DNA of 20,000 bases, taken from NCBI GenBank assembly GCA_037447605.1, contig JBBHKD010000029.1, positions 1 to 20,000 of the forward strand, in the 5' to 3' direction. Under the pieces are notes generated by a model that did no database searches, had not been told where the DNA came from, and saw only the letters and a list, made by a program, of their open reading frames with translations. The translations under genes and the position numbers were made by a program. Below, one piece after another: positions 1-20,000 of this stretch (position 1 is the first letter of the stretch; every line of letters begins with the position of its first letter). Origin of the DNA: Zygnema circumcarinatum SAG 698-1b (taxonomy: Eukaryota > Plantae > Zygnematophyceae).

Positions 1-518
1 CCAATGGCGGGAACCGCCCGCGTGTTCCTCTTTGACTCGGGCCAGGTGAGAGGTGGCCCTGCTTGTCTGAATGCTACGCCCGCGTTATTCGGCTTGCCAA
101 CAGCGCAGCCGTCTGTCGATGCCGCGGTCGAGAGCCTACAGCCTTGATCCGTGACGATCGCGCGTCCGTACCAGCGGGAAGCCGTTATTATGCAGACGAA
201 GCGGAAAAGATCAAAAAGGGGATCAGGGCCAGCGGCACGAATCAATCGCGAGCCGGATTGGTCCCGTGGTGCCAGATTGAGTAAAGGCAGTGATCCTCCT
301 CTCTGGCTGAGAGGAGGGACCTTAGCGTGGCGTGGGGCCATAGGGTATGTGGCAGCCCCACGGGTGAACCGATTCTTATGGTTCGAACCCGGGACTCGAT
401 AGATCACATAGGGTATCCGATGCCCTACTTAGTTAGATGCTGCATTGGATGGAAACATAAAACCACGCGGGGCTCTAAGTAACCCTTCCCCCCTTGGAAA
501 TTGGTAGCGTTCGCTACA
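1..518. mobile_element. Probable LTR terminus (ends ...TTCGCTACA), abutting a gypsy RT remnant
   Basis: Non-coding and GC-rich, ends in ACA at 518; gypsy RT similarity starts within ~10 bp; the other end is outside the window. Confidence 0.4.
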
Positions 519-527
519 TCCGAGCCT

Positions 528-1186
528 ATCGAGATCCAGCACGTCTGGTGATGTGCAGCGCGTTCGAGCAGCAGATTGGTCATTTCAATATAGGTGGCAT
601 TTGCCCACTGGATTGACTAATGCTCGTGACTTTCGGTATCATGAACAGAAGTGTTCATCGTGGATAAGATTTGCTGGTTTACCTCGATGATATCCTTGTC
701 TTCAGTAAGACGGAGGAGGAACATCTTGAACACGTTCGAAAAGTGTTTGAGACCCTAAGGAAACACCAATTTTATACCCGAGAGAAAGAAGTGTCACTTC
801 ATGCGGCGAGTTTAAACGCTTGCAGAGGTACATCTGAATGATCAAGACGCCGACGGACCACAGCAAAGTTCTGGTGAAACCTGAAGCGAAGCCGTGACTT
901 TTACATACGATTCGATCATTCTTAGGATTTTGCGAATTATTTTTCCCAAGTAAGTTCATCCAAGGGTTTAGTAAATTGGTTACTCCCTTGACTAATTTGT
1001 AGCGTTCAGTGTCCCACACTTTGCATAAGACCCACGGAATGTCAAAAGAAGCATTTGGTATCGCCATGCACTATTCGCAGCACCTACTCTCCGTTTAAGC
1101 GGGACCCATCGAAACCATATAAAGTGGTTTGTGATGCTTCCGGATTCGCCTTGGGTGCCGTCTTGTTTCAAGATGGCCAACCTTTG
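528..1186 (+). pseudogene. Decayed Ty3/gypsy RT-RNase H fragment
   Basis: Translatable remnants YLDDILVFSKTEEEHLEHVRKVF and PYKVVCDASGFALGAVLFQDGQPL; near-identical stretches to 16780-17433; many indels; truncated at 1186. Confidence 0.92.
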
Positions 1187-2139
1187 TGTTAGTAATTCCA
1201 TGGGTAGGGGCCTACCTCGAAGCAGTCGCCTCGCTCGGCTCTCTTGAGGTCGTATTGAACATCTTCGCGCGCGACGAGCGTTACGCCCGAAGGAAAGCTC
1301 AAGGCGGTCTGCCAGACAAGAGGCGTCAGATAGAAGCCCGCGGTGTAAAACTCGATTTTTCTTTGGGTGAGTACAGCGATTCAGCGGCCACTGGTACGCT
1401 TAATGCATTTGCACTACCCCGCCCTACTTATTTCCCAAGGTAGCTGACACTACTCCTCTTCTTAGCTACGGGAGGCTCGGCCTGCATTTCATACACACCC
1501 CATTGGCATGTATGGTATGAGGGTTATTTCTTCACGAGGAATGCTACTCTACATATCACTTCCTAGGCTAGCTTCACGTGGCAAATCACATTGGTGGCTG
1601 TCACGCGCCTGTGGTGCATGCGATCCAGCTGACGATTTTAGCGTTGGCAACCGGCTAAAATGCAGGGCCGGTCTCCTCCATGGATTGGCGGCGTCGAGGC
1701 GAGTCGGAAGTAGTGGAGTGTTCCGCCCGGCCGGTACTGGCGTTCGGCCGGCCGGCCTGCGTCTGCGGACCGGTCTCCCATGGATTGGCCGCGTCGAGCA
1801 GGTGAGGTAGTGGAGTGCATGTGCCCGTCACGGTTCACGAACTTAGCGGCTGTGGCGCCCTCGGCGTCGTACATCTCAGGGACTTCCAGCGTCCTGCCTT
1901 CTTGTATATGGCGCTTCGCGTCTGTCGCGATAGAAAAGTGTCGTCCGGCGACATATCGTCGCGTCGCCGGGAAGCGCCCGATACTCCATTTCGTCATGTC
2001 GATCCCCGGAACTATCGCGTCACATTGGTCGCGCGGTAGGTGACCCGTGCTAATAAGCTTCATGTTAGCGTCCTGAGTTCAATTTATCCGGTAGAGACTA
2101 TCGCCCAAGCGTTATGCGACCTCTGGTCCGTCCACAACA
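1187..2139 (-). repeat. Copia 3' LTR (~953 bp, TGTTG...TAACA on minus strand)
   Basis: TGTT/AACA termini; the right end abuts the PPT; the left end coincides exactly with loss of gypsy homology (CCTTTG|TGTTAG versus CCTTTG|GCGTAT at ~17433). Confidence 0.85.
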
Positions 2140-2150
2140 TTCCCCTCGGT
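2140..2150 (-). other. Polypurine tract of the copia element
   Basis: Minus strand reads ...CCGAGGGGAA immediately before TGTTG. Confidence 0.75.
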
Positions 2151-2189
2151 CCTAGGCTCTAAAGGGACCCGAGATTCGGAGGCGATGTT

Positions 2190-3490
2190 CCCTCCATGGG
2201 GTGGTCAGTTGACCCCTTGGTCTCCAACATATACAGGCCATATCTTTTGGTCTTCACAAAAAGGAACCGCGCGATCTCGCCGCCTCCACTAGATCTAAGC
2301 GTATAGTGGTCTTTGGATCTTAATATGTTTGCTTAGCACATGAAATCGCGGATTCTCCATAGATCATGGCGTGGAGGATTTTGTTGTCGGGTCGGGGATA
2401 TGCAGGGAATGCATTGATTAACCACATTCCTGCGAAGAATAGTGCCCGGCCAGACCGCCTCTGCAGCGTACGTGACATCGCGGCCACGTATTACTGCCGG
2501 TACTTCGGCAGAGCCGTATCTGTAATTTTGAACCGAGATGACTCCTCCCGCGTTCAGATACGCGTATCCTGAAGTGGACTTTGCCGTATCTGGATCTCCT
2601 CCCCAATCTGCATCCGTGTATCCGAACACGGAACTGCCGCGCCCCCTCTCGAACCGTAGTCCATAATGGGACGTCCCTTTTAGATATCGAAAGATTCTCT
2701 TGACTGCCTCCCAATGCTTAGCCCCTGGATTCTCCATGTACACGGAAATTAATGCCTGTTGCTTTCGCCCGGATCAGGGCGCGTTCCACCATATAGATTG
2801 CATTAAGAACTGTAGATGGCGGACACGCGCAATTACTACCGCCCATCTCAGCGCCTCCGCCTCGAGTGAGGGCTCATGTCCGGTGAGCTCAGCAGTCCAT
2901 GGGGTGGGCATGGTGAACATTTGTCCATGTTGAACCGCGAGACTTCCGCTGGCGTACTTCTCTAGCCCGAGGAACAAGCTTGATCTCTCCCCCTCTTAAA
3001 GGCCCGGATGCGAAGATATTCAGCGGTAGAGATCGACATCTGAATTACGCTTTAGAAGGTCGAGACCACAGAGGCCGCTCTTCATGGAGGGAACTCACAA
3101 TGATGAGGGAGTCATCTACGTGAATATCTGAACATGCAATGCGTCTCCCTCCCCTTGCGTGTACACCGAGTGGTCGGCGTTGAAGCGCGTGAAGCCATTC
3201 TTGATGAGCAGTTCGTGGATTTTCTGGTACCAAATTCTCGGCGCTTGTTTCAGCCCGTATAGGCTCTTGACAAGTCTGCCCGAGGGCGAGGTGCTTTCTG
3301 CTCACAGTTCAAGCGTTCCCCTCCGGGTTCTTTGCATGCTGTAGATCTCCTCCTGAGATCTCCATAAAAGAAATGCGTTTTGATGTCCAATTTGGTGGGC
3401 GTGCGTATAGATGCGCATGATCGCGAAATCAATCTTGGCCATACTTGATGAGTTGAACAACTTCTGAGGTCGCGAAAGGTTTGAGAATAA
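2190..3490 (-). pseudogene. Copia RT (RVT_2) core and RNase H, frameshifted
   Basis: Remnants LDIKT, SLYGLKQAPR, HVDD (YVDD position), HWEAVKRIFRYLKGT, GYTDADWGGDPDTAKSTSGY and ENPRFH..SKHI. Confidence 0.92.
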
Positions 3491-4492
3491 TCAATTCAAT
3501 TCTGGCGCAAAACCTTTCGCCACTAGCCGTGCCTTGAACCTATCTACACTCCCATCTGATTTCCGTTTGACTTTAAACACCCACTTGCAGCCGATTGCCT
3601 TGCGTCCTGGGGGCAGCTTCTCTAGCCGCCATGTCCCATTCTCCTTAAGACTATTCAGCTCGCTATCTATGGCGACTCTCCACTTCGCTGCGTCCGCTCC
3701 ATCCAATGCGTCGGAATAGGTAGGCGGCTCCTCGAAATGTGCCATAAGGCAAAGTGCCATTCCTGTGAAGTCGGCTGAGTCAAGGGGTACCTTTTCTGGG
3801 TTACCCCTCGGCCTCTTCCCCCTCTGAGTCCATGGGTTCCTTGGACCGAAGTCCCCGTATTTTTCAGGCTTGTTCCTGGGCCTCCAAGGTGGTTTATTCC
3901 CGTAGAAGGGTGTAAACCCCTTCGCGTTGGCGTATAGGGGTGGGTCCATCCCATGCCGCGGTACCCATTTGGGTTGTACCTGCGCAGTAGGGAGCTCCTC
4001 CGCTTCATCTTGAGTGATGTCTTGATCGTTGTCAATATCGGACAGGTTGTCATCGGGCTGTTCCTCCGGGAATGCCGATTCAGGCGCTTCCTCCTGAAGG
4101 GCCTCTTCTCCACGTTGCGGCGACACCGAGCGCCGAGGTGGGTTCTGATCCGTTGGGCCGAAGGGGAAGGACGCTGGTGGGGGCAGATCCTCACCTCCCA
4201 GAATATCCCTCACTGGGAGAAATTCTATGGTCGGGAGCGGCTCCACTCGAGTCCGCGCGTGCTGCGTCTCCTTGCGGTTTTCCTCAACGGTAAGGTCGCG
4301 ACTGGTCAGGACCTTCTCTGTGGACGGATTCCATATGCGATAAGTCAAACTGTCGGCGTTGTAGCCAAGGAAGTAGCCGAATTCTCCTCTCAGACTGAAC
4401 TTCGTCGTCTGCTTGCTCCTGGGAATCGCTAGCCAGCATGGCGAGCCGAATACTCGTAAGTGCTGAATTGTGGGCTTTCTCCCACTCCACAT
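3491..4492 (-). CDS. Copia pol segment: integrase C-terminal SH3-like region, linker, RT N-terminus
   Basis: 333-aa ORF with HLRVFGS..FLGY..YRIWNP and ELNSLKENGTW..KWVFKVK..RFKARLVAKGF. Confidence 0.93.
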   Translation of the reverse strand: MWSGRKPTIQHLRVFGSPCWLAIPRSKQTTKFSLRGEFGYFLGYNADSLTYRIWNPSTEKVLTSRDLTVEENRKETQHARTRVEPLPTIEFLPVRDILGGEDLPPPASFPFGPTDQNPPRRSVSPQRGEEALQEEAPESAFPEEQPDDNLSDIDNDQDITQDEAEELPTAQVQPKWVPRHGMDPPLYANAKGFTPFYGNKPPWRPRNKPEKYGDFGPRNPWTQRGKRPRGNPEKVPLDSADFTGMALCLMAHFEEPPTYSDALDGADAAKWRVAIDSELNSLKENGTWRLEKLPPGRKAIGCKWVFKVKRKSDGSVDRFKARLVAKGFAPELN

Positions 4493-4533
4493 CTCCTCCG
4501 GTACTTTCTTGTGATCCTTCAGGNNNNNNNNNN

Positions 4534-5014
4534 CTGTGGGCTGTACGGGGCCGTGAACTCGTGTCGGATCCCAAGGGACTTGAGATATTCAGAGAATTGG
4601 AGGGATTTATATTCTCCCCCATTATCCGTCCGGAATCTCTGAATCCTCTCGCCGGACTGCCTTTCTACCTCGATCTGCCAAGTACGAAAGGTGTTGAATG
4701 CCTCGCTCTTGTGCTTCAATAGCGCAACCCAGATCTTCCTTGAGTAGTCATCAAGGAATGTGATGAAGTACCTCGATCCTCCCTTAAGTCTGCAGGGTAT
4801 TCGGTCCACGGATGTCCATTTGTGAGCGAGCTCGACCTAAGGTGTTGCGGCGGAGCGTCTCCAGCCAGGTGAATTCAAATGAAGGGGTAGCGATGGGTCT
4901 TACGCCTTGATCGGCCGAGACTTCTCCACGTTTTCGAGGCGTCGTGAGGGAAAACCTGGGGCCGAGGCTACGAGTAAGGTCTCAGTTAGCCGGCACGGCC
5001 GGGTGCCCAAGTCG
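4534..5014 (-). pseudogene. Copia integrase core (rve) plus degenerate zinc-finger region
   Basis: YFITFLDDYSRKIWV, RTDNGGEY and TAPYSPQ; remnants RLGHP (5000-5014) and KTHRYPF (4881-4904); the gap at 4524-4533 hides the rest of the core. Confidence 0.9.
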
Positions 5015-5552
5015 GCCGATTCCGCGGTCGAGAATTTGAATCGGAGGCAGCGTGTATGCGGTTTCGAGTCCCCATTGAATCGCGGCTCCTTACTGCTTTT
5101 TGGTAGAATTTGTAGCGCCGCCCGGAGCATGAGCTTATTCGTCCATTGTCCGCGTCCGCGGCGTAAAGGTCGCGGTAGAGCCAAAATTAAGGGCCCAGGA
5201 CTTAGCCCGTCTTGGCGTATCTTGTCCATTATGGATTAGCGGGTGTTCTCGTCACTCACTTTGTCGGTGACGCTCGTGGTTTCGATTTCGCAAGTTCCCG
5301 TCGGAACTTCCCTCGCTCGTCGAAAATGGCCGCTCCCGTCGTCTTTGTGGGCTGGCCCATGGTGTGGTACGCTGCGTGAGTCTGCGGTTGGAACTTCGCC
5401 ATTGTCGCTGATGGCTCCAGGGCGGAGTTCGCGGTCGATCCCTACTTCCTTGATTTTTTAGAGCCGTTCACACCAGAGTTTGAGGTTAGTCTTCCTCCGA
5501 GTGACCGCAAGACTCGGCAACTAAGCGCCGCTTCGGCTTTCGCTTGGATCGA

Positions 5553-6020
5553 CTAATTCCGTTTTACGGTTTGATCTAGGTAGTAGAGCCCTCCCCGCTG
5601 GGTCCCTCGACACAGGATTTTTCTGGTTTTTCTATGCACTATTTTGCAGGTATTCTGCCTAAATATCCCCTCATATCCGCTCCCGCAGATCTGACTAACC
5701 GAAAAGAAGTTATTTCTAAGGGTTGGGGTGTGCAACACGCTACCAATCCTGATTTGGGAAGCTGTTCCTTCACCGCATGGTGACAGCTGGACTACTCCTC
5801 CTTGTGTAACAGCGATCTGGTCTCCCGTGGCTGACGTCACCGCTCGTGACTCATCCAGCATCTGCATGTGAGAAAATAGAGACTTGTCGCTGCACATGTG
5901 CTTAGAAGCACCTGAGTCTATAAGCCACGGCAGATAATCAGAATAGTCAATTTCATTAACTGAAATTTGATTTACAAATGCTGCGTGCTTTGCTTCACTA
6001 GCCGACAGACTCGCGCTCAT
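5553..6020 (-). CDS. Copia aspartic protease and start of the GAG-pre-integrase region
   Basis: WLIDSGASKHMC, NFFSVSQI and GLYYL motifs. Confidence 0.92.
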   Translation of the reverse strand: MSASLSASEAKHAAFVNQISVNEIDYSDYLPWLIDSGASKHMCSDKSLFSHMQMLDESRAVTSATGDQIAVTQGGVVQLSPCGEGTASQIRIGSVLHTPTLRNNFFSVSQICGSGYEGIFRQNTCKIVHRKTRKILCRGTQRGGLYYLDQTVKRN

Positions 6021-6043
6021 CTGGGCGGCTACANNNNNNNNNN

Positions 6044-7553
6044 GAGCGCGCGGTCACCGCGGTGCCGATTGCCACGTAGATGCCACAGTGGCGCCACGTA
6101 TGCCACGTCGATTCCACACGTGTGCATGTATATCCACGTTGGCGCCACGTCATTTAAAACCACTAAAATTGAACTTCGAGTGTGCTCGCCGTCGCTTGCC
6201 CACCGCCCATTGAAATTGAACATCGTGTCCTGGTACCGGTAGGTCTAGAGTTCGATCTCTACTGGAGGTGCATCGGGTCCTTACGCCCGGCCGCCGCCGC
6301 TTGCCTACGGCCCATTGAATTTGAACATCATGTCCTTGTACCAGGAGGTCTAGAGTTTGATCTTTGCTGGAGGCGTGTTTGCTACACAGCCCGAGCGAGC
6401 GAGGGAGGCCTTGCTTGCTTGCGCAGAGCGGTGTGTGGCGGCCACGCCCCCCCCCTTTACGCATTACCACCGCATGTGCTGCAGGTACGCCTCTATCCAT
6501 CTTTTTGCATTCTGCTTTCAACATTCTGCCTTCTGCATTCTGCATTCTGCATCTTTTTTTCTATCCATCCATTTATGCAGCGTGGTTTACTTACCTCTTT
6601 CTTTTATTGTAGAAATGGATCCAAGAATTCCTCATCTCTATCCTCATCATCTAGGGTTGAGTCCAGAAGACGAAGCGTAGAGCGTATTTGATGATGCCTC
6701 TTATCTAGTGAAGAAGAATAGATGTATTATAGGAGATGAAGAGCTTGAAAGGACAATATTTGCAGCGGAAACGACAATCGAAGATGAAGAGGAACAAAGA
6801 CGCGACATGCCTATAAAGCCAAGGTATGCTTTTGGCTTTCTACTTTTTGCTTTTGCTTTCTGCATTCTGCATTCTGCTTTTTGCATTCTGCATTCTGCAT
6901 TCTGCATTTAGCATTTCAGCATTCAGCATTCAGCATTCAGCATTCAGCATTCAGCATTCAGCATTCTGCATTCTGCATTCTGCATTCTGCATTCTGCATT
7001 CTGTATTCTGCATTCTGCTTTCTGCTTTCTGCATTTTGCATTTTGCATTCTGCTTTCTGCATTCTGCATTTTGCATTCTGCATTCTGCTTTCTGCTTTCT
7101 GCATTCTGCATTCTGTATTCTGCATTTTGCATTCTGTATTCTGCATTCTGCATTCTGCATTCTGCATTCTGCAATCTGTATTCTGCAGTCTGCATTCTGC
7201 ATTCTGCATTTTACATTTTGCATTCTGCATTCGACATTCTGCATTCTGCTTTCTGCTTTCTGCATTCTGCATTTTGCATTTTGCATTCTGCTTTCTGCTT
7301 TCTGCTTTCTGCATTCTGCATTCTGCATTCTGCATTTTGCATTCAGCATTCAGCATTCAGCTTTCAACATTCAGCCTTCAACATTCAGCTTTCAGCATTC
7401 AGCATTCAGCATTCAGCAGTCTGCATTCTGCATTCTGCATTTTACATTTTGCATTCTACATTCTGCATCCTGCATTCTCCTTTCTACTTTCTGCTTTTTG
7501 CATTCTGCATTCTGCATTTTGCATTCTGCATTCTGCATTCTGTATTCTGCATT
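6044..7553 (+). repeat. Copy 1 of a ~1.62-kb tandem duplication (5' end of the Crypton-like gene plus satellite)
   Basis: Near-identical to ~7666-8785 at offset 1621 in the unique part; bounded by N gaps on both sides. Confidence 0.92.
6850..7553 (+). repeat. Heptamer satellite (TTCTGCA)n, array 1
   Basis: About 100 units with TTCAGCA/TTTTGCA/TTCTGCT/TTCTGTA variants; runs into an N gap. Confidence 0.97.
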
Positions 7554-8469
7554 NNNNNNNNNNNNNNNNNNNNNNNNNNNNNNNNAGCTCCCCGCCCCCC
7601 GGCCACCCACCCGCCCTACAGCGTCCTCCCAGGTACGGCGCAGCGCCCGAGCGGGCGACGCCGGCCGAGCGCGCGGTCACCGCGGTGCCGATTGCCACGT
7701 AGATGCCACAGTGGCGCCACGTATGCCACGTCGATTCCACGTGTGCATGTATATCCACGTTGGCGCCACGTCATTTAAAACCACTAAAATTGAACTTCGA
7801 GTGTGCTCGCCGTCGCTTGCCCACCGCCCATTGAAATTGAACATCGTGTCCTGGTACCGGTAGGTCTAGAGTTCGATCTCTACTGGAGGTGCATCGGGTC
7901 CTTACGCCCGGCCGCCGCCGCTTGCCTACGGCCCATTGAATTTGAACATCATGTCCTTGTACCAGGAGGTCTAGAGTTTGATCTTTGCTGGAGGCGTGTT
8001 TGCTACACAGCCCGAGCGAGCGAGGGAGGCCTTGCTTGCTTGCGCAGAGCGGTGTGTGGCGGCCACGCCCCCCCCCTTTACGCATTACCACCGCATGTGC
8101 TGCAGGTACGCCTCTATCCATCTTTTTGCATTCTGCTTTCAACATTCTGCCTTCTGCATTCTGCATTCTGCATCTTTTTTTCTATCCATCCATTTATGCA
8201 GCGTGGTTTACTTACCTCTTTCTTTTATTGTAGAAATGGATCCAAGAATTCCTCATCTCTATCCTCATCATCTAGGGTTGAGTCCAGAAGACGAAGCGTA
8301 GAGCGTATTTGATGATGCCTCTTATCTAGTGAAGAAGAATAGATGTATTATAGGAGATGAAGAGCTTGAAAGGACAATATTTGCAGCGGAAACGACAATC
8401 GAAGATGAAGAGGAACAAAGACGCGACATGCCTATAAAGCCAAGGTATGCTTTTGGCTTTCTACTTTTT

Positions 8470-9410
8470 GCTTTTGCTTTCTGCATTCTGCATTCTGCTT
8501 TTTGCATTCTGCATTCTGCATTCTGCATTTAGCATTTCAGCATTCAGCATTCAGCATTCAGCATTCAGCATTCAGCATTCAGCATTCTGCATTCTGCATT
8601 CTGCATTCCATTCTGCATTCTGCATTCTGTATTCTGCATTCTGCTTTCTGCTTTCTGCATTTTGCATTTTGCATTCTGCTTTCTGCATTCTACATTCTGC
8701 ATCCTGCATTCTCCTTTCTACTTTCTGCTTTTTGCATTCTGCATTCTGCATTTTGCATTCTGCATTCTGCATTCTGTATTCTGCATTCTGCTTTCTGCAT
8801 TCTACATTCTGCATTCTGCATTTTGCATTTTGCATTCTGCATTCTGCATTTTGCATTCTGCATTCTGCATTCTGTATTCTGCATTTTGCATTCTGCATTC
8901 TGCATTCTGCATTCTGCATTCTGCATTCTGCATTCTGCATTCTGCATTCTGCATTCTGCATTTTGCATTTTGCATTCTGCATTCTGCATTTTGCATTCTG
9001 CATTCTGCATTCTGCATTCTGCATTCTGCATTTTGCATACTGCATTCTGCATTCTGCATTCTGCATTCTGCATTCTGCATTCTGCATTCTGCATTCTGCA
9101 TTTTGCATTCTGCATTCTGCATTTTGCATTCTGCATTCTGCATTGAGCATTGAGCATTGAGCATTGAGCATTCTGCATTCTGCATTCTGCATTCTACATT
9201 CTGCATTTTGCATTCTGTATTCTGCATTCTGCATCCTGCATTCAGCATTCTGAATTCTGCATTTTGCATTCTGCATTCTGCAATCTGCATTCTGTATTCT
9301 GCAATCTGCATTCTGCATCCTGCATTCAGCATTCAGCATTCTGCATTTTGCATTCAGCATTCAGCATTCTGCATTCTGTATTCTGCATTCTGCATTCTGC
9401 ATTCTGTATT
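8470..9410 (+). repeat. Heptamer satellite (TTCTGCA)n, array 2
   Basis: About 130 units; variant blocks GCATTCA (~8531-8586, ~9330-9370) and GCATTGA (~9146-9170). Confidence 0.97.
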
Positions 9411-10810
9411 ACGTGCGTGCGCATTTTACATTTTACGTGCATTACGGATTACGCGTGCGGATTACGCATTATTTGATCGGCATTCTGCGTGCATCACGCG
9501 ATGCGTGCATTACAGATACGCATTACGTATTCTACATTCCTACATTCATTTTGACTTTACGCTTTTTCTTTGAGTATACATTTATGTCATTTCTTTTGAA
9601 GAGTATTGAATTAAGGGTTTCTTTCCTTTTTTGTGCGAGGGCAGCTACTGACTCAAAGCCAATTATTAGTTTAGGGTGAGAAGTTCGCCCAAAAATCTAC
9701 AAAGCGTCATGCATGCAATAATAAAACAATTTGTTGCTAAGTGTACGAAGCTTGAGAGAGGGTTGGAGGCGAGTTCGCGTGAGAGAAAAAATTAGCGGCA
9801 TTTTTTTGTTTTTGGAGATTGAAACTATTAGCACTATGAATGCAAGTCCTTTAACAACAACTTTGTCTAATAGTATTTTTCATTCTGACATGCAAAAACT
9901 GTGAAATTTTTATAACAACGTGATCGTATATCTTTGGGTGTAAAGAGTAGTGAAAACTTATGAAGTCAAGTATATAGTGGAGATCATGGCCCGCTCTACG
10001 ATGAAAGAGCGACTTGACAAGTTATCTTTTACGCTTTTCTAACTACTGCGTTCACGTATTACGCGTTGTAGATTCGGCAATCATGCAATTCACGTATTTT
10101 GCATTATGTATTAGCATTATAGATTCTGCATTCTAAATTCGGCATTCAGCGTGCATTCATGTTAAATTCTGCATTCATTCCGGCATTCAGCCATTCAGCT
10201 GTCCAGCGTGCGTGCAACGTTACCGCGTGCGTGCGTGCAATATTTCGTGCATTCTGCATTAGCATTTCATTCTGCATTACCAACTTTGTTGTTCTTCTTC
10301 TCTCTTTCCTGCTGGCGCACGTCTCTCTCTCTCCCTCCTTCTTTCTCCCACGCTTCCTCCTCCTACTCTAAATGTCTTTAGCAGATTTCTTGTGTCTGGA
10401 TGTTCATTGATCCTAAGCGAGGTACATTAGGATAAGCCCAGCATTTTGAGACTTTCAAAAAGTTGTTAAGTATATGGGGTCATTAACAACGAAACATATT
10501 TAAAGTATGGTAGTATGGTAAAATTTCTGTGAAAGCTGATGATGCTTGAGAGATGACCAAAGATCCGATTAGGTTAGTGTTCGATCTATTTATTGATGAT
10601 ATGGTTCTAGCGACTATTGTGTCCCGAATGTCTTTGTCCCCAGGTGTGGTGTCGCGTGGAAAAGAACTACCGGGAGGAGCGGTCGATATGGAAACTCGCT
10701 TTGGGCATTGAGATCCGGGTACGCGGTCGTGGATGGATATCAAGATATTTGTTCCACAGGTTCATTGTATCAGAAGAACCTCCTCCAGATCTTTGGAGCA
10801 ACTACCTTTG

Positions 10811-10911
10811 GTGAGTCTAAACTTATCCAATCAACTATTATTTGTGTATTTTGTTTATATTTTTGCACAAATGTACTGTTTTTATTGACACGTTTGTTTG
10901 TTGTTTTGCAG
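10811..10911 (+). other. Spliceosomal intron (101 bp, GTGAGT...TTGCAG)
   Basis: Canonical borders and a T-rich interior; splicing joins TG|G to give W-Y-K-S-L-L-F-P in frame. Confidence 0.8.
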
Positions 10912-10983
10912 GTACAAATCCTTATTGTTTCCATCCAAAGACTCCACTGAGGTTGAAATGTGTCGTGAAGCGCAATCAGTTAA

Positions 10984-11210
10984 GTAGAAAAAATCATTGA
11001 GCACTTAGATCTCCGTTGTTCAGGCACCTTGCACATATTCCGTGGCGCGGCAGCAAGGGAATGTTTCGCGCACTCTTGTGGGTTTGATCAAATCCAGGTG
11101 GCAGGGAGGTGGGGCCAAGCTTCAAATAAATCCCTTGCAATCAATTACCTTCCTTCGATTGTCCCTCCCGTCTGTAGGGTGCTTGCAGGATTCAAAAAGG
11201 AAGGCGATGA
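10984..11210 (+). CDS. Tyrosine recombinase catalytic C-terminal boxes: HxxR 11032-11043, W 11110-11112, nucleophile Y 11146-11148
   Basis: VEKIIEHLDLRCSGTLHIFRGAAARECFAHSCGFDQIQVAGRWGQASNKSLAINYLPSIVPPVCRVLAGF. Confidence 0.88.
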
Positions 11211-11415
11211 NNNNNNNNNNGAGATTGAGAGGAGGGGAAAGGGTTAACGTTATGTGTTTTTATGTGTAGGTTACTCGTGGAGTGCCTTTTAAGTCCCGGA
11301 ATCGTTCAGCAGGAGGCTTTGTGGACATGCTGCGTTATTTTGCATGTGTTTTATTCCACGATGCATCGTTCGCTCCACAAATTCCACTGTTCGCGAATCA
11401 TCCATTCTTCCAATG

Positions 11416-11776
11416 GTGAGCAATGGGGATGGTCTTCCTTTTAGGGTTGCTGCTGCTTTCAGGGTTGTTACTACTTTTTTTGTTGCTGGCCTTTTTGCAC
11501 TTTCTGCTTTTAGTGCTCCTTTCTCTGCTTTTGCTGCTGCTGCTCCTATTTCAGCTGCTTTTGCTATTGTTGAGAAAACACTGCTACAGCTGTTGTTGCT
11601 GCTGCTGCTGTGTTTTCTCCTGCTGCTGCTTCTTTTTTTGCTTTTGTTGTGTTGCTGCTGTTGGTGCTGCTGTTGCTGTGGGCGGATTGGAGGTGGAGGC
11701 GGAGAGTAAGAAGGAGGAAGGGGGCTTCATTAACGGGGTGAGGCGGACGTCGCCTGTTTTGAGGTTGTTATTTCAG
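11416..11776 (+). other. Spliceosomal intron (361 bp, GTGAGC...TTTCAG) with T/CTG-rich low complexity
   Basis: Splicing joins NHPFFQ to CEEVLNFARAARIE in frame. Confidence 0.65.
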
Positions 11777-12212
11777 TGAAGAAGTTCTCAATTTTGCGAG
11801 AGCGGCCAGGATCGAGGGGGGGAGGAAGAAGGAGGCCTTTGACAGGATCCAAGCTAAGACAACACAATCTCAGTCATGGACTCGAACTATGGTGAGTAAA
11901 ACCATGCTGCATCACTCTCATCACTCTCATCTCTCTAGTGTATCAAACAAAAATTACGAATATCCTCATATACTTGATCTACTTTTTCACACTGGTGTAC
12001 GTTTCAGTATCAACTTTTTGTTGATTATAGACAGAAGCAATATTTCTTGAGGAGCAATGAACACAGACACAAGTGGGACGACAAAGCGGGGTGATGGCAT
12101 GGACCAAAGGTGGAGCTAGGAAGCGGTGACCAGAGAATACTGCAAGCGGCATGCAGGAAAGGACGAATAATGTGGCTGAAGGCAGGGGGAGCCAAGACAT
12201 GCTGGGAAGCGG

Positions 12213-12527
12213 GAGCAAGCATGGACGAGAAGAAAGCGGTTGGGGCCAAGAGGTCAAGAGGCGGGGGAGCAACATGGGCCGAAGGAAAAGCGGTTGGGGC
12301 CAAAGGCGGTCGAGGAGAGGCAGGGGAGCAAGCATGGGCGAGGAAAAGCGGTTGGGGCCAAGGCAGTCAAAGAGGCAGGGGAGCAAGCATGGACGAGGAA
12401 AGAAACGGTTGGGCCCAAGGCAGTCAGAGAGGCAGGCCAGGAATGGGGCCAGGAATGGGGCCAGGAATGGGGCCAAGCATAGAGCCAGGCATGGGGCCAG
12501 CCATGGGGCCAGGCATGGGGCCAGGGG
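12213..12527 (+). repeat. Coding minisatellites: four ~57-bp units, then about eight 12-bp CCAGG(A/C)ATGGGG units (PGMG)
   Basis: Repeated AGCAAGCATGG..AAGCGGTTGGGGCCAA..GAGGCAGG; the 12-mer run spans 12437-12527. Confidence 0.9.
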
Positions 12528-12574
12528 CTGAAGACGATCAGGGACTTAGAGTGCATGTTGGGAAACAGTTAGAT

Positions 12575-12900
12575 AGATATTTAGTCAGCATGCACACAGA
12601 TGTACTTAGCTTGTGGAAGGAGTTCTGGTTAATGGGCGAGAAGGAAAAAAGCCCATCATCGAATTGATGGCATTTTTGGTGTGTAGCGTTGAATGCAGGT
12701 GGTGGACGACAAGAAGGAGAAAATAATCGGGAAAAATGCTTGGTGGAATCAGATATATCCTATTGTCATAGAAATTATATGGAGGATGGATGAGGGTGGT
12801 GAAGACGAGAAAACGGCAGTGGCGAATATCTCTTCAATGATGAAGGCTGTCAGTCCAAAAACCATTGATGGGTTGGTCCGGGCTTTAAAAGGGTGGGATG
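12575..12900 (+). pseudogene. GCR1_C-like DNA-binding domain, frameshifted
   Basis: RYLVSMHTDVLSLWKEFW, then KPIIELM..RWW, then AWWNQIYPIVIEIIWRMDEGGEDEKTAVANI..TIDGLVRAL. Confidence 0.65.
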
Positions 12901-13378
12901 TTGTTAAAAGGGGGAACAGTGGACATGCTCGTGAAGCATTGGGATTGTTGGGAAAAGAACCTGTTGAGCAAAAGACTTTTGGAGAACGTAAGAATACAAA
13001 GAATGATGTGTGGCTATAGTATAGCAGAGAAAAGGAAAAGGAAATAAAAGTAAAATAGAATGTCCAACTACATGCGGTAGAGATTTGCAGCGCTTCTTGG
13101 AGAAGGCCGCCATTGTTAAAGTAAGCTTCTTTGCCCACTTTTCTCCCCATGCATTTTATATTTTTCTTTTTCTTCATCAACTTGGTGATTGTTCTTCTTC
13201 TCCCTTCCTCCCTGCAACTTGCATCCCTTCATACCTCCCTGACATGAAAAAATCGGCTTTTAGGGTTTGTTAGGGTTCTTTTCTATCTCAATCCGTGTTC
13301 AGTTTCATGAAGTCATATTGCTTGACTTTAAAACAAGCTTATATTTGGTTTGGTTTATCTTCGCAAATGTGGTCGCAG

Positions 13379-13549
13379 GCCCTGGACGGACTGCACTTGG
13401 AATGAGAACGATCGTTGGAATCACAATTGCTCGGCTCGTTCTGCTGCCCCTCGTGGTAGCCGGCGGCTTGGGACTCGTCCCTCCACAAGACCCCATGCTG
13501 CGTTTTGTTCTTCTCCTCCAGTTTGCGTGTCCGACCGCCATCAATCTTG
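13379..13549 (+). CDS. PILS: PIN-LIKES auxin carrier, penultimate exon
   Basis: CAG| acceptor and |GT donor; GPGRTALGMRTIVGITIARLVLLP..LGLVPPQDPMLRFVLLLQFACPTAINL. Confidence 0.88.
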
Positions 13550-13731
13550 GTTTGTGGCCGTGCCTAACCTGCATTTAAAACAAGGGAAATTTGCATTTAG
13601 ATTTTTTTGAGTTGACGCACGATTTACTTAATCATTCGTTCACTATTCGCAATGCATGGATTCACTGAGACGATGATATCAAAGCGCACGCAGGGGATGG
13701 AGTTAATGGATGCGTTTGCTAGGAAATACAG

Positions 13732-13856
13732 GAACTATGGCGCAGCTTCACGGTGTGGGGGCTAGTGAAGCTTCTGCAGTAATGTTTTGGGGATATCTCT
13801 TGTGTGGCTTTCCGCTAATTGCCTTCATGGTGATCTGCTTCGCTCTCTTCTTCTGA
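13732..13856 (+). CDS. PILS: PIN-LIKES auxin carrier, last exon
   Basis: CAG| acceptor, phase-compatible with the previous exon; (G)TMAQLHGVGASEASAVMFWGYLLCGFPLIAFMVICFALFF-stop. Confidence 0.88.
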
Positions 13857-14051
13857 TGCTGTGAATGAGGTAAGCAGGCCTTTCTACCCCCTTAATCAGA
13901 GACAGACTATCTCACATTAAACCGTAAAGGGAACAAGATCTTCTAGGTGTTGTGGCTTAGGCCCGCCAATGGCCAGGCATGTGTTTAGTTTGTCCTGGAA
14001 ATTTGGNNNNNNNNNNCAAGCTCCGTGGAGTTTTCTCCAACAGCAAAACAC

Positions 14052-14326
14052 CTGCCGTACATCCCCGTACACGACATCGCAATTGCTGCCTCCCGACTCA
14101 ATCTGTACGGCGGCCGACAAAGGGACGGGGAGGGGAGGGAGAGAGGCAGGAGAGGAGAGCCGACCCCAGGACGCTGTCGGGCGGTCTGCCATCCCCCCAA
14201 GACATGAGCGTCGGCTGGCAGCGCTGGTGCGCGCATTCCGCTAAAAATTGGGGGAAATTATTCCACTCACCGTCTCTCTAACGCGTCGCTCCACTTGTCG
14301 AGCAAGCGGAAGGTCGGAGTCGTCAT
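14052..14326 (-). CDS. Possible first two exons of an unidentified gene (14326-14271, 14102-14052)
   Basis: TATAAAA at 14376-14370, ATG at 14326, GTGAGT donor, and a polypyrimidine tract + CAG acceptor; no recognisable product. Confidence 0.3.
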
Positions 14327-14853
14327 GCAAGTGTGCGTAATTTTAATACAAACGACTGAATGTTTTCCCTTTTATACTCTTGTGCGGGCGTGCGTGGCCG
14401 TGCCAGACGACGATTCGGAGCAGTTGCAGTACTGCATCGTACTCAGTACGGGACGGTGACGCTGGGGGAGAACTTTGTAGAGCAGTGCTACTACGGGAAG
14501 GGGGCCCTCTTCTAGCACTTTGCGGTTCTTAGGCACTTCCAAAATAAGAGCATTCTAAAAACCTGCAAGTATCAAATTCGTGTATCGTGAATGGGCAGTT
14601 ACGTAAATCTGAAATTAGAATTGGACACCCCGGAGGTGGGCAAGGCCCTAGCTGAACTGAGGGTTGAATTGTGCCTCCACTAGTGAGAAATGGCCGACTC
14701 TGTAAATAAAGGATGGGTTAGGATGAAAGGCCATGTGAAAACTCAAGACATATCTTTGGGGTGGATTTGTGAAATTTCAAGCGCTTGGAAACAGCAGTCC
14801 GAGGAGGAAGCCTTGAAGAGAAGGATAGAGAGAGGAGCCAGGATGGAAAGGTT

Positions 14854-15272
14854 GGAGAGGGAGGAGGGAGGGAGGGAGGGAGGGAGGGAGGGAGGGAGGA
14901 AAGGAGGGAGGGAGGGGAAGGAGGGAGGAGGGAGGAGGGAGGGAGGGAGGGAGGGAGGGAGGGAGGGAGGAGGGAGGAGGGAGGGAGGAGGGAGAGGGAG
15001 GGAGGAGGGAGGGAGGGAGGGAGGAGGGAGGGAGGGAGGGAGGGAGGAGGGAGGGAGGAGGAGGGAGGGAGGGAGGGAGGGAGGGAGGAGAGGGAGGGAG
15101 GGAGGGAGGGAGGGAGGGAGGGAGGGAGGGAGGGAGGGAGGGAGGGAGGGAGGGAGGGAGGGAGGGAGGGAGGGAGGGAGGGAGGGAGGGAGGGAGGGAG
15201 GGAGGGAGGAGGAGGGAGGGAGGGAGGGAGGGAGGGAGGGAGGGAGGGAGGGAGGGAGGGAGGGAGGGAGAG
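14854..15272 (+). repeat. (GGAG)n microsatellite, ~420 bp
   Basis: Purine-only GGGA/GGA tract. Confidence 0.97.
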
Positions 15273-15445
15273 TGAAGTTCAGAGGGCCCACCCATGGAGA
15301 CAACTTAGGGCGTGCTCGGCCTTACACTCCCATCGTGGGCCAAGTGGCCAAGATATTGACCACCTAGGACTGGGAAGGGTTCCCTGGAATTGAACCTTGC
15401 GAAGGTTGCAAGGGTTCGATGCGGCGCGGTATACTGAGACATATA

Positions 15446-15938
15446 TGTATCGCGTCGCCGATGTGGTCGAGGGATCACGGAATCCCGACCCACATCTCCT
15501 TATGTTTTGGAGTGACCGCTGTCTGGCACATTACGGGTTACTGCTGTATGCATGGGCTACTAGTTCACTGTGTGCGTGTGGGAAGGACCCGGCCCATGAC
15601 GACGGGACACCGGCCGCGTCGCGCGCGGCGCGCGCGCGGATGCGGGGCATCGCACGCCTACACCCTCTGACCCATCCCAGTCAGACACGTGGCGGTCTGC
15701 CATTGGACAGCCCTGCTTCCAATCCTCCATGCTGGTAGGAGGTTCAACGGGGGAAGCGTAAAGGGGCGAGGGTGACTGTCGTCACCCAACCAACGTACCG
15801 GCATTCGGTTGCACCCCTGCCCGGGGCTGCGCCACCCTCTGAAGCTCTCTCTCTCTCTCTCTCTGCCCTCTCTCGCTGAACTCGGAGTGCTGGTGTGTGA
15901 TTCCGCGCAGACTGAAGAGGCGGTTTTCAGTTGTTACA
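15446..15938 (+). repeat. Gypsy 5' LTR (3' end exact, start tentative)
   Basis: Ends TTACA directly before the PBS; TGTA at 15446 would give TGTA/TACA termini. Confidence 0.6.
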
Positions 15939-15939
15939 T

Positions 15940-15951
15940 TGGTATCAGAGC
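15940..15951 (+). other. Primer-binding site for tRNA-iMet
   Basis: TGGTATCAGAGC starting 2 nt after the LTR-terminal CA. Confidence 0.92.
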
Positions 15952-16312
15952 CGCGTTGCGGCCTTCTCTTTGACAGAGAACCTGCGGGTCATNNNNNNNN
16001 NNNNNNNNNNNNNNNNNNNNNNNNNNNNNGTAATGATGTCTTGGTGAATTGTGCCACGAATGCCATGCATGTCATGCGGGACACATCCCATATCCTTGGG
16101 CTGCATGTGCTGATTCCTCAGCACTTGGCAGTTCGCACTTTTCCCAACGCCAACTGGCGGTTGGTGAAACAGTTGAGGAAAGGGCACAAGTTGGTGGAAG
16201 GATCCACCAGTTCGCTGGTTGGATCCCCCTACACCTTGGTGTGGAGGACAGCTCGTCCTCAACCTTCGCATATAGTGCGATCTATGTTCCACCTTGCCCA
16301 TCGTGCCATGAC

Positions 16313-16898
16313 CTTCATCGGGTCAGCCAATGGCCACCCAGCAGTTCTACTGCTAGATACTGGGGCAGATGCTAACTTTGTTAGTTCTGCGTTCACCCAG
16401 AGATTTGGGTTGACCACAGATCCCCATTCAGAAAGTGTTACTTTCGGGGATGGACGCAAGGGCCAGATCTCTGGTAGCGTCACACTCAAGATCAAGCTCC
16501 AATCCTACTCCGGGGCAGTCAAGTGTCTTCTAACACAACTGGCCCCTGGTACTGANNNNNNNNNNAAGGGCTGGATAGAACCCAGTCAGAGCCCCTTTGG
16601 GGCGCCCATCTTGTTTGTTGGGAAGAAAGATGGTTCGTTGAGGATGTGCATTGATTATCGCGCACTCAACAAGATCACTGTAAAGAATCGATTTGCTTTA
16701 CCACGTATCGATGATCTGTTGGATCGTCTTCACGGCGCCAAAGTGTTCACATCACTTGATCTTGCTCAGGGGTATCATCAGATCCGCGTCACGGAAGCTG
16801 ATGTGCCAAAAACTGCGTTCCGGACGCCGATTGGTCATTTCCAATATAAGGTGTTGCCCTTTGGATTGACTAATGTCTTGCAACTTTCCAGGCTGTGA
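16313..16898 (+). CDS. Gypsy protease and RT N-terminal half (N gap between them)
   Basis: LLDTGA; [52 protein letters not shown]. Confidence 0.95.
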
Positions 16899-17227
16899 GG
16901 AAGTTGACATGTTCACAGCATGGATGAGCTTGTTTTTGGTCTACCTCTATGACATCTTGTCTTTAGGAATATGGATTGAGAACATCTTGAACATGTTCGG
17001 AAAGCGTTCAGTAGCCGAGGAACACTAATTTTATGCCAAGAGGAAAGAAGTGTCACTTCATGCAGCGCGAGTTGTTTATTACAGCCTCATGATCAGGCTT
17101 CCGCCCTTGATCCTGCCAAGTTTCAGTGGGCACAAATTTGGTAAACACTCATTGATGACTTGCACTCAGTCCAGGTCTTTCTGCATTTGTGAGTCATCTC
17201 TGGAATTGATCCCAAGGGTTTAGTAAG

Positions 17228-17614
17228 TTGGTTACTCCTTTGACTAATTTGACACGTTCCGGTGTCCCCTTCACATGGACCCCTGAATGCCAGGACGCGT
17301 TCGAGGGTGTACGCCATGCACTGGTTACCGCACCCACTCTCCGTTTAGCGGACCCGTCCAAGCCTTATGAAGTGGTTTGTGATGCTTCGGGATTCGCCTT
17401 GGGTGCCGTCTTGTTTCAGGATGGCCAACCTTTGGCGTATGAAAGTCGCAAAATGAATCCCGCTGAGCGCAACTATTCTGCAACAGAACAGGAACTGCTT
17501 GCAGTGGTCCACGCCCTAAGGACATGGCGGTGCTATTTAGAGGGGGCGAAAGCGGTCATGCTGGTCACTGACTACTGCCTGCTGACGTTCCTCTGTCCAA
17601 CAGACCCTGCTTAG
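17228..17614 (+). pseudogene. Gypsy RNase H
   Basis: VVCDASGFALGAVLFQ, AYESRKM, NYSATEQELLAVVHAL. Confidence 0.93.
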
Positions 17615-17959
17615 GCGGCAGTGCACCCGTGGTTTGGAGTTCCTCTAAAGTTTGACTGCCAGTGGGTCTCACCGGCCCGGAAGGCCGAAATGTAGCAGAC
17701 CCACTGAGTAGGCAGCCTCGGCATCTTGCCTGGATGGTGCGCTCGTCGACTCGAGTGTTGGTGGAACGAGATGACAGAGGTGAGGGGCCGGCCAACCCCG
17801 AGTCTCCGTCTCCAGTATGCTTTGTCATAGATCCCTCCACCAGTGACGCAGTCAACCCTCCTGCTCTCTCTGATCTCAGACAGATGATTCAGGAGGGGTA
17901 TACTGGTGATCCTTTGTTCCTGGATGGCCAAGGTAATGGCTATAAGGACAAAGTGGTGT

Positions 17960-19970
17960 CTAAGGACGGATTCTGGTACCACGGCCAGCAGTTGGTCGTG
18001 CCCAAGGCCGGGACTGTACGGCAGCTCATTCTGGGTGAGCTACATGATCCTCCGTACCGAGGTCACATGGGAGTTGCCAAAACCCGTGAGGCACTGCTCC
18101 GAGAGTTCTGGTGGCCTGGACTCTCGAGGGATGTGAAAGCGTATGTACTCGCTTGTCCAACTTGTCAACGAAACAAACCCCTGCACTGGCAGGATCCCTG
18201 GCCAGCTGCAACCCCTCACACCTCCTTTTCGGAAATGGGACAGTGTGGGTATGGACTTGATCACAGATCTTCCTGTGACACCTCGGGGGCATGACTCCAT
18301 CCTCGTCTTTGTCGATCGGCTCAGCAAGATGGTGCATTTTGCACCAACTACTAAGACCGCTGGGGCCGACGAGATTGCACGGTTGTATGTTGACAAAGTT
18401 GTTAGTGTAAAGTAGTTAGGACTTGTTGTATACTGGGAAGTTGCCGACCATAGCCCAAGGAGTTGTGTGCTCAAAAGTGTCCACATTGTACGGAGGGGCG
18501 CTTAGGTTGGTCGCACAAGTCTTTAAGGGGTGTGCAAGCAGCGCGAACATCGATCTGGCAAAGCAAGGGCATTGCATAATGTTGTGGAGCCAATCAGTGG
18601 TACGTACTCTGAAGGCCAGGACCTTGGATGTATGGACATTGGTCGGTGGCGCGGCGCGGCGTGGCGGAGTCAGATGTGACGTGGCGCGACGCGACAAATC
18701 GAGAAGTGACGAGGCGCGAATCAGCGCGCGGAGCAGAACTGACGAGGTATCCGTCAGGGAACGTTCACTTGAGGACTTGCGAATCGGAAGACTGCCACGT
18801 GTTGGGGCTTAAGGAAAGCCTGTACGGCCTAGGTCGTGGTGTTGCAAAGGCTTACGGGGTTTGACATGACGCCAAGTATGGAGGAGTCAGTATCATATGG
18901 TGAAGGACTGATGGAGATAAGGCTGAGGCGGATCCCTACCAATGATGCTGCCGGAATCCCGTGAAGCCAGGAGGTATCGATGGTTGGCGGATATTAGGAT
19001 CGGATAAGGGTCTTGCAAGGCGTAGCATGTGCGGCCGTGACGTGACAATGTCACTATTGGCGCCATATTGTATTTAAGGGTTAGATTGTTTGGTAGAAGT
19101 TAACCTTCTCGTGACTCACATTCGGGAGTGAGGCTATCTTGCTTCGGTTAAAGAAGATAGTGGGAAGAGTTCAACTTGTAGTGGGTGGTTTATTCACGTA
19201 GCTTGAGTGGAGGTGCTTGAAGCTTGGCTCTAGTGTTGTCAAGTTGTATTTCATCTTTATCTTAAGGAGTTTTAGGCTGGTGGCTTTCTCCTTACATTTT
19301 CATATTTCCGCTGAGTTGTTCTCTTGCATTTAGTGTGCTTTGTGTGATTGAGCAATTCATTGAAGATGTCGAGTTCTACCCAAGGTAGAGGAGAAGTGGC
19401 CGCCCCACCAAGGGAGGGCGCTGCATCAACAAAAGTGTGGAGCCAGCATGGTCTTCAGTCAGAAATTGTTTCTGACCGTGATCCACGATTCACCGGCCAT
19501 TTTTGGACGGAAGTGCTCAAAATCGTTGGGACCAAGCAGGCGTTGAGTACAGCTTTCCACTGTAACCATGGCTAGACGATGGGCTAACAGGATCCTGGAG
19601 GATTACCTTTGGCATTACATGTGGGACCTACCCTGGAGCTAGGGGGATTAGCGCTCAGCTGCAGAAAGAGCTCATCAAATAATGCTTTTGAGGATTTGAT
19701 TCACCATCTCTTTCCCTTGACTTTGCTACATCCTCTAAATCCCCTGCAACCAAGGGATCAGCCCCCTGATCCGTGGAACATGGGCGTCCACAGAACCCCC
19801 GATCCTTGGAAGCTGAGAGGGACTGATGGGACTCAACCTCCCGCAGTCAGATCTTTTGTCCGGCGAATGTCTGAGGCGCTGCAGAGGGCACGGCAGACCC
19901 TGCTAGCGGCCCAGTCGCGACAAAAGGCCTATGCTGACCGTCACCGTACCCAACTCACCTTCAATGAGGC
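17960..19970 (+). pseudogene. Gypsy integrase, split by a solo LTR
   Basis: H..GHMG..WWPG..CPTCQRNK zinc finger; MDLITDLP, VDRLSKMVHF; VDKV|WSQHGL..IVSDRDPRFT; QSRQKAYADR. Confidence 0.93.
18400..19431. mobile_element. Solo LTR (1032 bp) with 5-bp TSD AAAGT
   Basis: TGTT...AACA termini; AAAGT at 18395-18399 and 19432-19436; removing it restores GAC AAA GTG TGG AGC (DKVWS). Confidence 0.95.
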
Positions 19971-20000
19971 GTGTGGGACGAGGTGTTGCCGAGACGCGAC

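Follow-up and report, generated by a model that had tools for sequence, protein, structure and literature searches.

The 20,000-nt stretch of Zygnema circumcarinatum SAG 698-1b that we analyzed (contig JBBHKD010000029.1, positions 1 to 20,000; hereafter the window) is rich in transposable elements and contains seven N gaps and two long arrays of the heptamer TGCATTC. Between a copia-type and a gypsy-type element lies, on the forward strand at 10406-13019, a broken gene that is very probably a copy of an intron-bearing Crypton-type DNA-transposon gene with the CryptonF architecture. As predicted from its letters, the gene would encode, in order, a tyrosine recombinase (YR) of the Crypton/Ndc10 fold, a low-complexity linker and a GCR1_C-like, probably DNA-binding, tail, with spliceosomal introns and no reverse transcriptase (RT). 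It was compared with three uncultured-eukaryote metagenome contigs of the European Nucleotide Archive (ENA) that carry related genes (GROS21-1 scaffold_28869, scaffold_7901 and scaffold_28362, hereafter L001, L003 and L004, respectively), and with the reads of four public runs of the same organism (two DNA studies, X1 and X5, and two RNA-type runs, X20 and X25). The parts of the gene, each with its evidence, are as follows.

10406-10810 (+): recombinase exon, N-terminal catalytic half (tblastn, frameshift-aware score, relatives' exon on NDC10_II 13-135).
10811-10911 (+): intron, GT..AG, 101 nt (RNA contig joint 10809/10911 in X20, 'GT..AG (cut +1)'; same position and phase in L003).
10912-11210 (+): visible part of the catalytic exon, with H-x-x-R at 11032-11043, GRW at 11104-11112, Y at 11146-11148, and AGF (tblastn, phmmer, BLASTP).
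11211-11220 (no strand): assembly gap of 10 N, true length about 150 nt (X5 DNA contig, RNA contig X25-16).
11270-11415 (+): exon after the catalytic Tyr, ..GGFVDMLRYFACVLFHDA..HPFFQ (tblastn E = 7e-5, z = 7; start and end positions as in L003).
11416-11776 (+): intron, GT..AG, about 361 nt, with CTG-rich imperfect repeats (RNA joints in X20 and X25).
11777-11896 (+): short exon, EEVLNFARAARIE.. (RNA contig X25-17 on 11776-11896, then on 12064-12164).
About 11897-12054 (+): intron, ends uncertain by a few bases (RNA contig X25-17).
12055-13019 (+): last coding exon, stop codon at 13017-13019 (tblastn, z = 22).
12572-12890 (+): GCR1_C-like tail within the last coding exon (tblastn to the tail of L003).

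Judged by its aligned letters, the copy presents the catalytic residues R..K..H-x-x-R..W..Y. The histidine (11032-11034), arginine (11041-11043), tryptophan (11110-11112) and tyrosine (11146-11148) are invariant in alignment A2 and are located where a sequence-only reading of this DNA had placed them. The preceding exon carries the motifs DPKRGTLG (10409-10432), LRDDQR (about 10540-10560), GK and RYLFHRF..PPDL..W (10740-10810). The box-I Arg lies in LRDDQR, at most one residue from the RGDDQR of the relatives, and GK is readable, but the frames are broken there.

The recombinase type was assigned through the relatives, which match NDC10_II and with which the window is collinear. We searched 1.84 billion representative proteins with the 75-aa catalytic piece (10984-11208) using phmmer, and two proteins were returned, one of them a true match (P0002, E = 2e-6). 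The other (P0001), a 983-aa carbohydrate-binding repeat protein, owes its score to summation over five repeats and was discarded as a false positive. P0002 is a 143-aa fragment from an uncultured eukaryote, with 37% identity over 70 residues (BLASTP) and an NDC10_II score of 26.1 bits, and it represents one exon of the intron-bearing gene found on L001, L003 and L004. The exon preceding it in the relatives matches NDC10_II at 46.4 and 42.4 bits (cut-off 26.3). Together, the relatives' exons cover positions 13-135, 154-266 and 270-298 of the profile, the last of these from a later exon. For the tail, the last open reading frame (ORF) of L003 matches positions 6-79 of the 80 positions of GCR1_C (20 bits, E = 8.5e-4, cut-off 23), and in Atlas the relative's last ORF has three GCR1_C clusters as its best matches (score 0.91, 186 shared features).

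The exon translations of the three relatives were then aligned to the 20-kb window with tblastn, and all matches were on the same strand and collinear. They cover 10725-10844 (E = 2e-5 to 3e-4), 10984-11193 (E = 7e-14), 11249-11413 (E = 7e-5), 12572-12733 (E = 9e-3) and 12705-12890 (E = 2e-8, or 8e-11 with relaxed settings). Because the frames of the window are broken, we also used a frameshift-tolerant local alignment, in which each query was scored against 40-60 shuffles. The segment 10380-10720 scored 79 (null 27 +/- 5, z = 10.6), which bears out the DPKRGTLG motif and the degraded LRDDQR first-Arg box proposed from the letters alone, both of which lie in it together with GK. The score rose to 124 for 10380-10815 (null 30 +/- 5, z = 18). 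Further downstream, 11221-11420 gave z = 7 and the C-terminal part z = 22, its frame-broken upstream half alone reaching z = 14.

Few other relatives were found. A homologous-protein search over 5.8 billion clusters returned three members of one small family with P0002 and, with the tail profile A1, only the profile's own family of two members; two metagenome scans at the Joint Genome Institute (JGI; profiles A2 and A3) yielded no relative. For the 108-aa C-terminal ORF of the window, Atlas gave weak bacterial look-alikes only and the homologous-protein search was empty. Sequence searches of the PDB with the relatives and with the tail profile found no Ndc10 or recombinase match, including no direct sequence match to the solved Ndc10 chains, and an AlphaFold2 model of the tail (mean predicted local distance difference test score 39.9) was too poor for fold comparison. 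This sparsity, with one true match among 1.84 billion representatives and that match only 37% identical, speaks against a sequenced fungus or oomycete as the donor in a recent transfer, without deciding between horizontal transfer and ancient retention.

The remnants of a whole YR gene had been proposed to begin further upstream, at 8236. The collinear matches and z values support this for 10406-13019, whereas the upstream part has no statistical support:

8236-10405 (+): claimed 5' exons, unsupported as part of the gene (no better than shuffles).

The proposed N-terminal box 'RPK..KQFVAKC' reached only z = 0.9-1.8 relative to shuffles, despite a pairwise E of 0.003: 'PKNLQ..KQFVAKC' (9688-9753) pairs at the expected place with 'PHNTKLAYY..HFIAWC' of the relatives. 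In L001 and L003 this N-terminal box has the form 'P-x-N-T..Y..W-C'. The putative first exon (8237-8445) presents an in-frame TAG at 8299-8301 and gave z = 0.3 in the frameshift-tolerant alignment (pairwise E = 0.77), and the stretch 9790-10410 gave z = 0.8. Across 9600-10628, few or no contigs of the runs were found at ≥90% likeness, and RNA contigs are strong from about 10629 (coverage was examined from 9600). The TGCATTC satellite occupies 6827-7553 and 8448-9410 (about 100-137 copies per array, 84-88% matches), with short arrays at 6506-6552 and 8127-8173. Its placement within introns of the Crypton gene rests on the 5' exons that lack support.

Within the supported part, RNA contigs confirm the introns at 10811-10911, from the gap to 11269, at 11416-11776 and at about 11897-12054 (joints 10809/10911, 11210 to 11268 and 11413 to 11776). 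All three of the introns examined against L003 have identical position and phase. The first lies inside a Trp codon, split after TG; the second ends at an exon that opens 17 residues ahead of the motif 'V-[KD]-[IM]-L'; the third follows 'HP[LF]F-x' in phase 2. The architecture that had been read from the letters, a YR and a GCR1_C domain in a gene with spliceosomal introns, holds for the recombinase (46 and 42 bits in the relatives) and for the introns, and the tail is the weaker element (20 bits in a relative, cut-off 23). Tandem repeats are present inside the intron 11416-11776 (11438-11477 and 11581-11679), where the version of the runs has an 18-nt deletion at 11438. The last exon contains in-frame tandem repeats at 12211-12525, with a 57-nt unit repeated 4 times and a 12-nt unit repeated 7.6 times, which translate into runs of Gly-Pro-Gly-Met type. 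The transcribed version in X25 is ~170 nt shorter at these repeats, indicating that the repeat number varies.

No RT-like ORF was found within 8236-13019, the RTs elsewhere in the window are parts of distinct copia and gypsy units, and no RT occurs in L003; these observations together place the element with DNA transposons and not with DIRS/Ngaro elements. That the recombinase is instead a remnant of a DIRS/Ngaro-type retrotransposon is very improbable. Such a reading could draw on the RT genes in the window (RVT_1 at 16566-16895 and 671-838, RVT_2 at about 3500 on the reverse strand), but these are part of complete gypsy-type (RT-RNaseH-integrase) and copia-type units that lie beyond the host exons or on the other strand. 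Moreover, the relatives combine NDC10_II with a GCR1_C-like tail, which is the CryptonF combination, and the 4 kb of L003 contain no RT beside the gene.

The copy as assembled is a pseudogene and cannot encode a recombinase protein. It carries at least four in-frame stops (10433-10435, 10709-10711, 10985-10987 and, in the spliced frame, a TGA at 12092-12094) and about ten frame changes: about five to seven between 10484 and 10709, one at about 10977-10987, and two or three in the tail (about 12626, 12673 and 12731). Despite these lesions, H-x-x-R, W, Y, the box-I Arg region and GK are readable. The assembly gap at 11211-11220 could be bridged with contigs of the runs. DNA contig X5-25 (1160 nt) aligns to 10988-11210 and 11221-11952 with 150 letters replacing the ten N, so both sides of the gap are continuous. 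Of the 303 nt of RNA contig X25-16, 148 align to the left of the gap and 63 to the right of about 11268, with 92 nt in between. Hidden in the gap are therefore the rest of the catalytic exon, about 92 nt or about 31 codons, and about 58 nt with which an intron of roughly 100 nt begins. From AGF to the end of the exon, the relative has 38 residues, and the five visible and about 31 hidden residues of the window fit this length.

The four runs contain a closely related version of the gene, in RNA and DNA, that is about 94-100% identical to the window depending on the segment. RNA contigs show it to be transcribed, with splicing at the introns predicted here, and at least one frame break is absent from it: small indels at 10977 and 10987 restore one continuous frame where the window breaks. 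An exact copy of the window occurs in none of the four runs, and at most of the listed positions every contig has another letter. The divergence is uneven, with about 6% at 12629-12997, about 4% at 11304-11610 and 10904-11025, and 0-0.5% in 11026-11210 and 11759-11952; on the contig with about 6% at 12629-12997, the adjoining flank (13000-13354) diverges by about 0.9%. Several versions also coexist within single DNA runs, at word depths of about 681 and 150 in X1 (11320-11479) and of about 121 against 41 and 50 in X5 (10854-10978), the low-depth versions being partly nearer to the window. Contigs drop rare variants, and contig depth is not copy number. This uneven divergence and the mixed depths suggest haplotypes, homeologues or gene conversion among copies. 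Since the major contig continues into the flank, the versions resemble haplotypes or a segmental copy, unlike insertions. The window could thus represent the minority form, as a haplotype or a paralogue, of a duplicated segment, the majority form being expressed and less damaged. Alternatively, the runs could derive from other strains in which the allele is intact.

These data bear directly on the possibility that the gene is intact and working, its stops and frame changes coming from a minority haplotype or paralogue that the assembler selected, or from errors of consensus and polishing caused by paralogous reads. We consider this possible, though less likely than not. It would account for the absence of the window letters from all four runs at most listed positions, for the frame-preserving indels, and for the contrast in divergence between the tail and its adjoining flank on one contig; likewise, X20-14 shows 0 differences over 289 nt in the neighboring exon region, and yet X20 shares the differences of the Crypton region. 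Against it, a variant dropped from the contigs may still exist in the runs, and the low-depth contigs do approach the window: X5-23 (depth 41) differs at 1 position in 69 nt and X1-4 (depth 150) retains the letters of the window at several sites. Moreover, about ten independent frame breaks and >60 substitutions are many for polishing error.

Several observations weigh against reading the locus as a Crypton-type copy, or limit what can be said of it. Searched alone, the nine translated pieces of the window gave no Pfam match, even at E ≤ 10. The GCR1_C match is below the threshold and comes from a relative rather than from the window, and the 5' third is unrecognizable as part of the gene, with no statistical support. 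With one readable copy and an unrecognizable 5' end, termini, target site and a second copy are not definable here, which concerns mobility in particular. At each listed difference covered by a single contig, four of the four runs differ from the window; the main copy of the organism may therefore lack the lesions, which could be specific to a minority haplotype or paralogue or, in part, be consensus errors. Finally, the coexistence of versions at different depths bears on the copy number. The collinear matches to relatives with NDC10_II, the catalytic residues and the shared introns nevertheless make the Crypton-type gene the very probable interpretation.

Downstream of the element, on the same strand, are exons of a transporter gene.

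13091-13121 (+): host exon, outside the element (RNA contig joint 13120 to 13730).
About 13378-13553 (+): host exon, Mem_trans (Pfam Mem_trans positions 251-311 of 343, 17.9 bits).
About 13731-13856 (+): last host exon, Mem_trans (Pfam Mem_trans positions 310-342 of 343, 22.1 bits).

Each Mem_trans exon alone is under the cut-off (25.7), and the consecutive exons match consecutive parts of the profile. Atlas places the transporter exons in Mem_trans clusters, some of them from Streptophyta; a PDB search with a transporter exon gave no match. By sequence likeness, the exons 13378-13553 and 13731-13856 appear to encode the C-terminal end of a Mem_trans protein (auxin-efflux-carrier/PILS-like). 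The Crypton gene ends about 70 bp upstream of the exon 13091-13121 and probably sits inside an intron of the transporter gene, in the same orientation. The exon upstream of 13091, indicated by a loose transcript end before 13086, is not in the window, so the upstream exons of the transporter are >13 kb away or on another scaffold. RNA contigs join the exon 13091-13121 straight to about 13730 and omit the exon 13378-13553, which was found only in the intron-retaining contig X20-14 (depth 89 versus about 1660 for the last exon). RNA contig X25-19 runs from 12495 through 13120 and then jumps to 13730; it may represent read-through or a path of the assembly graph.

The linkage to PILS-like exons, which the sequence-only reading had noted, and the absence of contamination are supported by the DNA contigs X1-6 and X5-26 of two independent studies, which span 12515-13354 unbroken from the tail across the exon 13091-13121, and by the RNA joint from 13120 to 13730. 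The chance that the assembler joined fungal or oomycete contamination to plant sequence is accordingly close to nil. CryptonF elements are best known from these organisms and the assembly is gap-rich, with one gap inside the gene; but these contigs from separate studies include the exon that is spliced to the last Mem_trans exon, X5-25 bridges the internal gap, every run with such contigs is labelled as the same organism, and no close fungal or oomycete match was found among the 1.84 billion representatives.

The same contigs bear on whether the locus belongs to a small family of Crypton-derived host genes (a domesticated recombinase or DNA-binding protein) that are selected, expressed, keep conserved introns and are not mobile. 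We regard this as unlikely. In its favor, transcripts of the related version exist and are spliced, relatives of just 37% identity have their introns at conserved positions and in conserved phases, and neither the window nor the databases searched gave any hint of many copies. DNA contigs that continue unbroken from the gene into the flank also imply that the unit that is repeated or allelic extends beyond the gene. In yeasts, documented cases of domesticated CryptonF are Gcr1, Msn1, Hot1 and Cbf2/Ndc10 (PMC3212892). However, the catalytic residues lost in the domesticated yeast genes (PMC3212892) are all kept in the window and its relatives, the window copy is decaying, and introns and transcription are also found in fungal and Chlamydomonas Cryptons. 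A bolder form of the idea, to which we give slightly less credit still, is that the organism keeps a small family of expressed, intron-conserved and catalytically complete Crypton-derived recombinase genes as host genes at fixed loci, in a lineage for which the literature searched describes no Crypton, this one within a transporter intron with transcripts running into the last exons of the transporter (12495-13120 joined to 13730).

The remainder of the window contains the following elements.

671-838 (+): isolated RVT_1 fragment (Pfam domain).
About 2300-6020 (-): copia-type element with RVT_2, SH3_retrovirus and Pol_BBD (Pfam domains).
About 16000-19600 (+): gypsy-type pol with RVT_1, RT_RNaseH_2 and Integrase_H2C2, interrupted by N gaps at 15993-16029 and 16556-16565.

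A block of 1.5 kb occurs twice (6044-7553 and 7667-9170); besides the putative exon 8237-8445, it includes the upstream sequence and the first part of the heptamer array. Save for a 2-bp indel at about 6118, its two copies do not differ outside the satellite, and the first is flanked by N gaps (6034-6043 and 7554-7585). The repetition probably reflects a redundant contig placed by the scaffolder and not a true tandem duplication. At 6190-6380 and 7810-8000, two adjacent units of about 100 bp each contain a ggtctagagttcgatct motif that recalls the T-arm of tRNAs; these units could be remnants of a short interspersed element (SINE), and ARAGORN called no tRNA. A (GAGG)n microsatellite of about 107 copies is located at 14857-15270.

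Cryptons are among the rarest and least understood transposons of eukaryotes, with a patchy range of fungi, oomycetes, diatoms, animals and one chlorophyte. In the literature searched, we found no report of Cryptons in streptophytes. CryptonF was described from fungi and oomycetes (PMC3212892), and an active CryptonF family with a YR and GCR1_C is present in the green alga Chlamydomonas reinhardtii (PMC9977147), so the suggestion of an undescribed plant Crypton lineage was overstated. The element type is already known, and the gain is an extra host for a known kind rather than a novel type of element. Like Crypton-Cn1 of Cryptococcus and CryptonF-1_cRei of C. reinhardtii, the window presents a single intron-containing gene with a YR followed by a GCR1_C-type tail and no RT (PMC3212892, PMC9977147), and the NDC10_II profile that covers the recombinase type of CryptonF is matched by its relatives. 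Unlike them, it is very distant from anything named, the tail of its relative scoring just 20 bits on GCR1_C; it has a long tandem-repeat linker between the two domains; and the copy is broken. The family is also defined by terminal direct repeats of 5-6 bp (CACCG/CAYCG in Chlamydomonas), whereas no termini are definable for the window copy.

The genes on L001, L003 and L004 share with the window the order of domains, 37% identity in the catalytic exon, 32-35% in the tail, and three introns of the same position and phase. They differ by their open exons, by a lower G+C content (37.5% versus about 45%) and by the lack of a tandem-repeat linker of the window type. The yeast proteins Cbf2/Ndc10 and Gcr1 have an NDC10_II recombinase fold and a GCR1_C domain of common origin with those discussed here (PMC3212892); in contrast to the window, which keeps H, R, W and Y, they no longer have the catalytic residues and are encoded by fixed single-copy host genes.

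By analogy with its family, an intact protein would cut and rejoin DNA through the R-K-H-R-W-Y active site, and the recombinase would excise the element as a circle. The excised element would then insert where a few target bases match one terminus, as in the Goodwin model of excision and insertion, which is supported by mutation-accumulation data in Chlamydomonas (PMC9977147). The GCR1_C-like tail would be expected to bind DNA.

The version expressed in the organism may be a live transposon or a retained host gene. One caution applies to this locus, as the broken version of the assembly was reproduced by none of the four public runs compared. A transcribed, intron-bearing CryptonF-like lineage in another genome of the green lineage extends the host range of Cryptons. 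The locus also offers material on whether such recombinases stay mobile or undergo domestication, as did Gcr1 and Ndc10 in yeasts.

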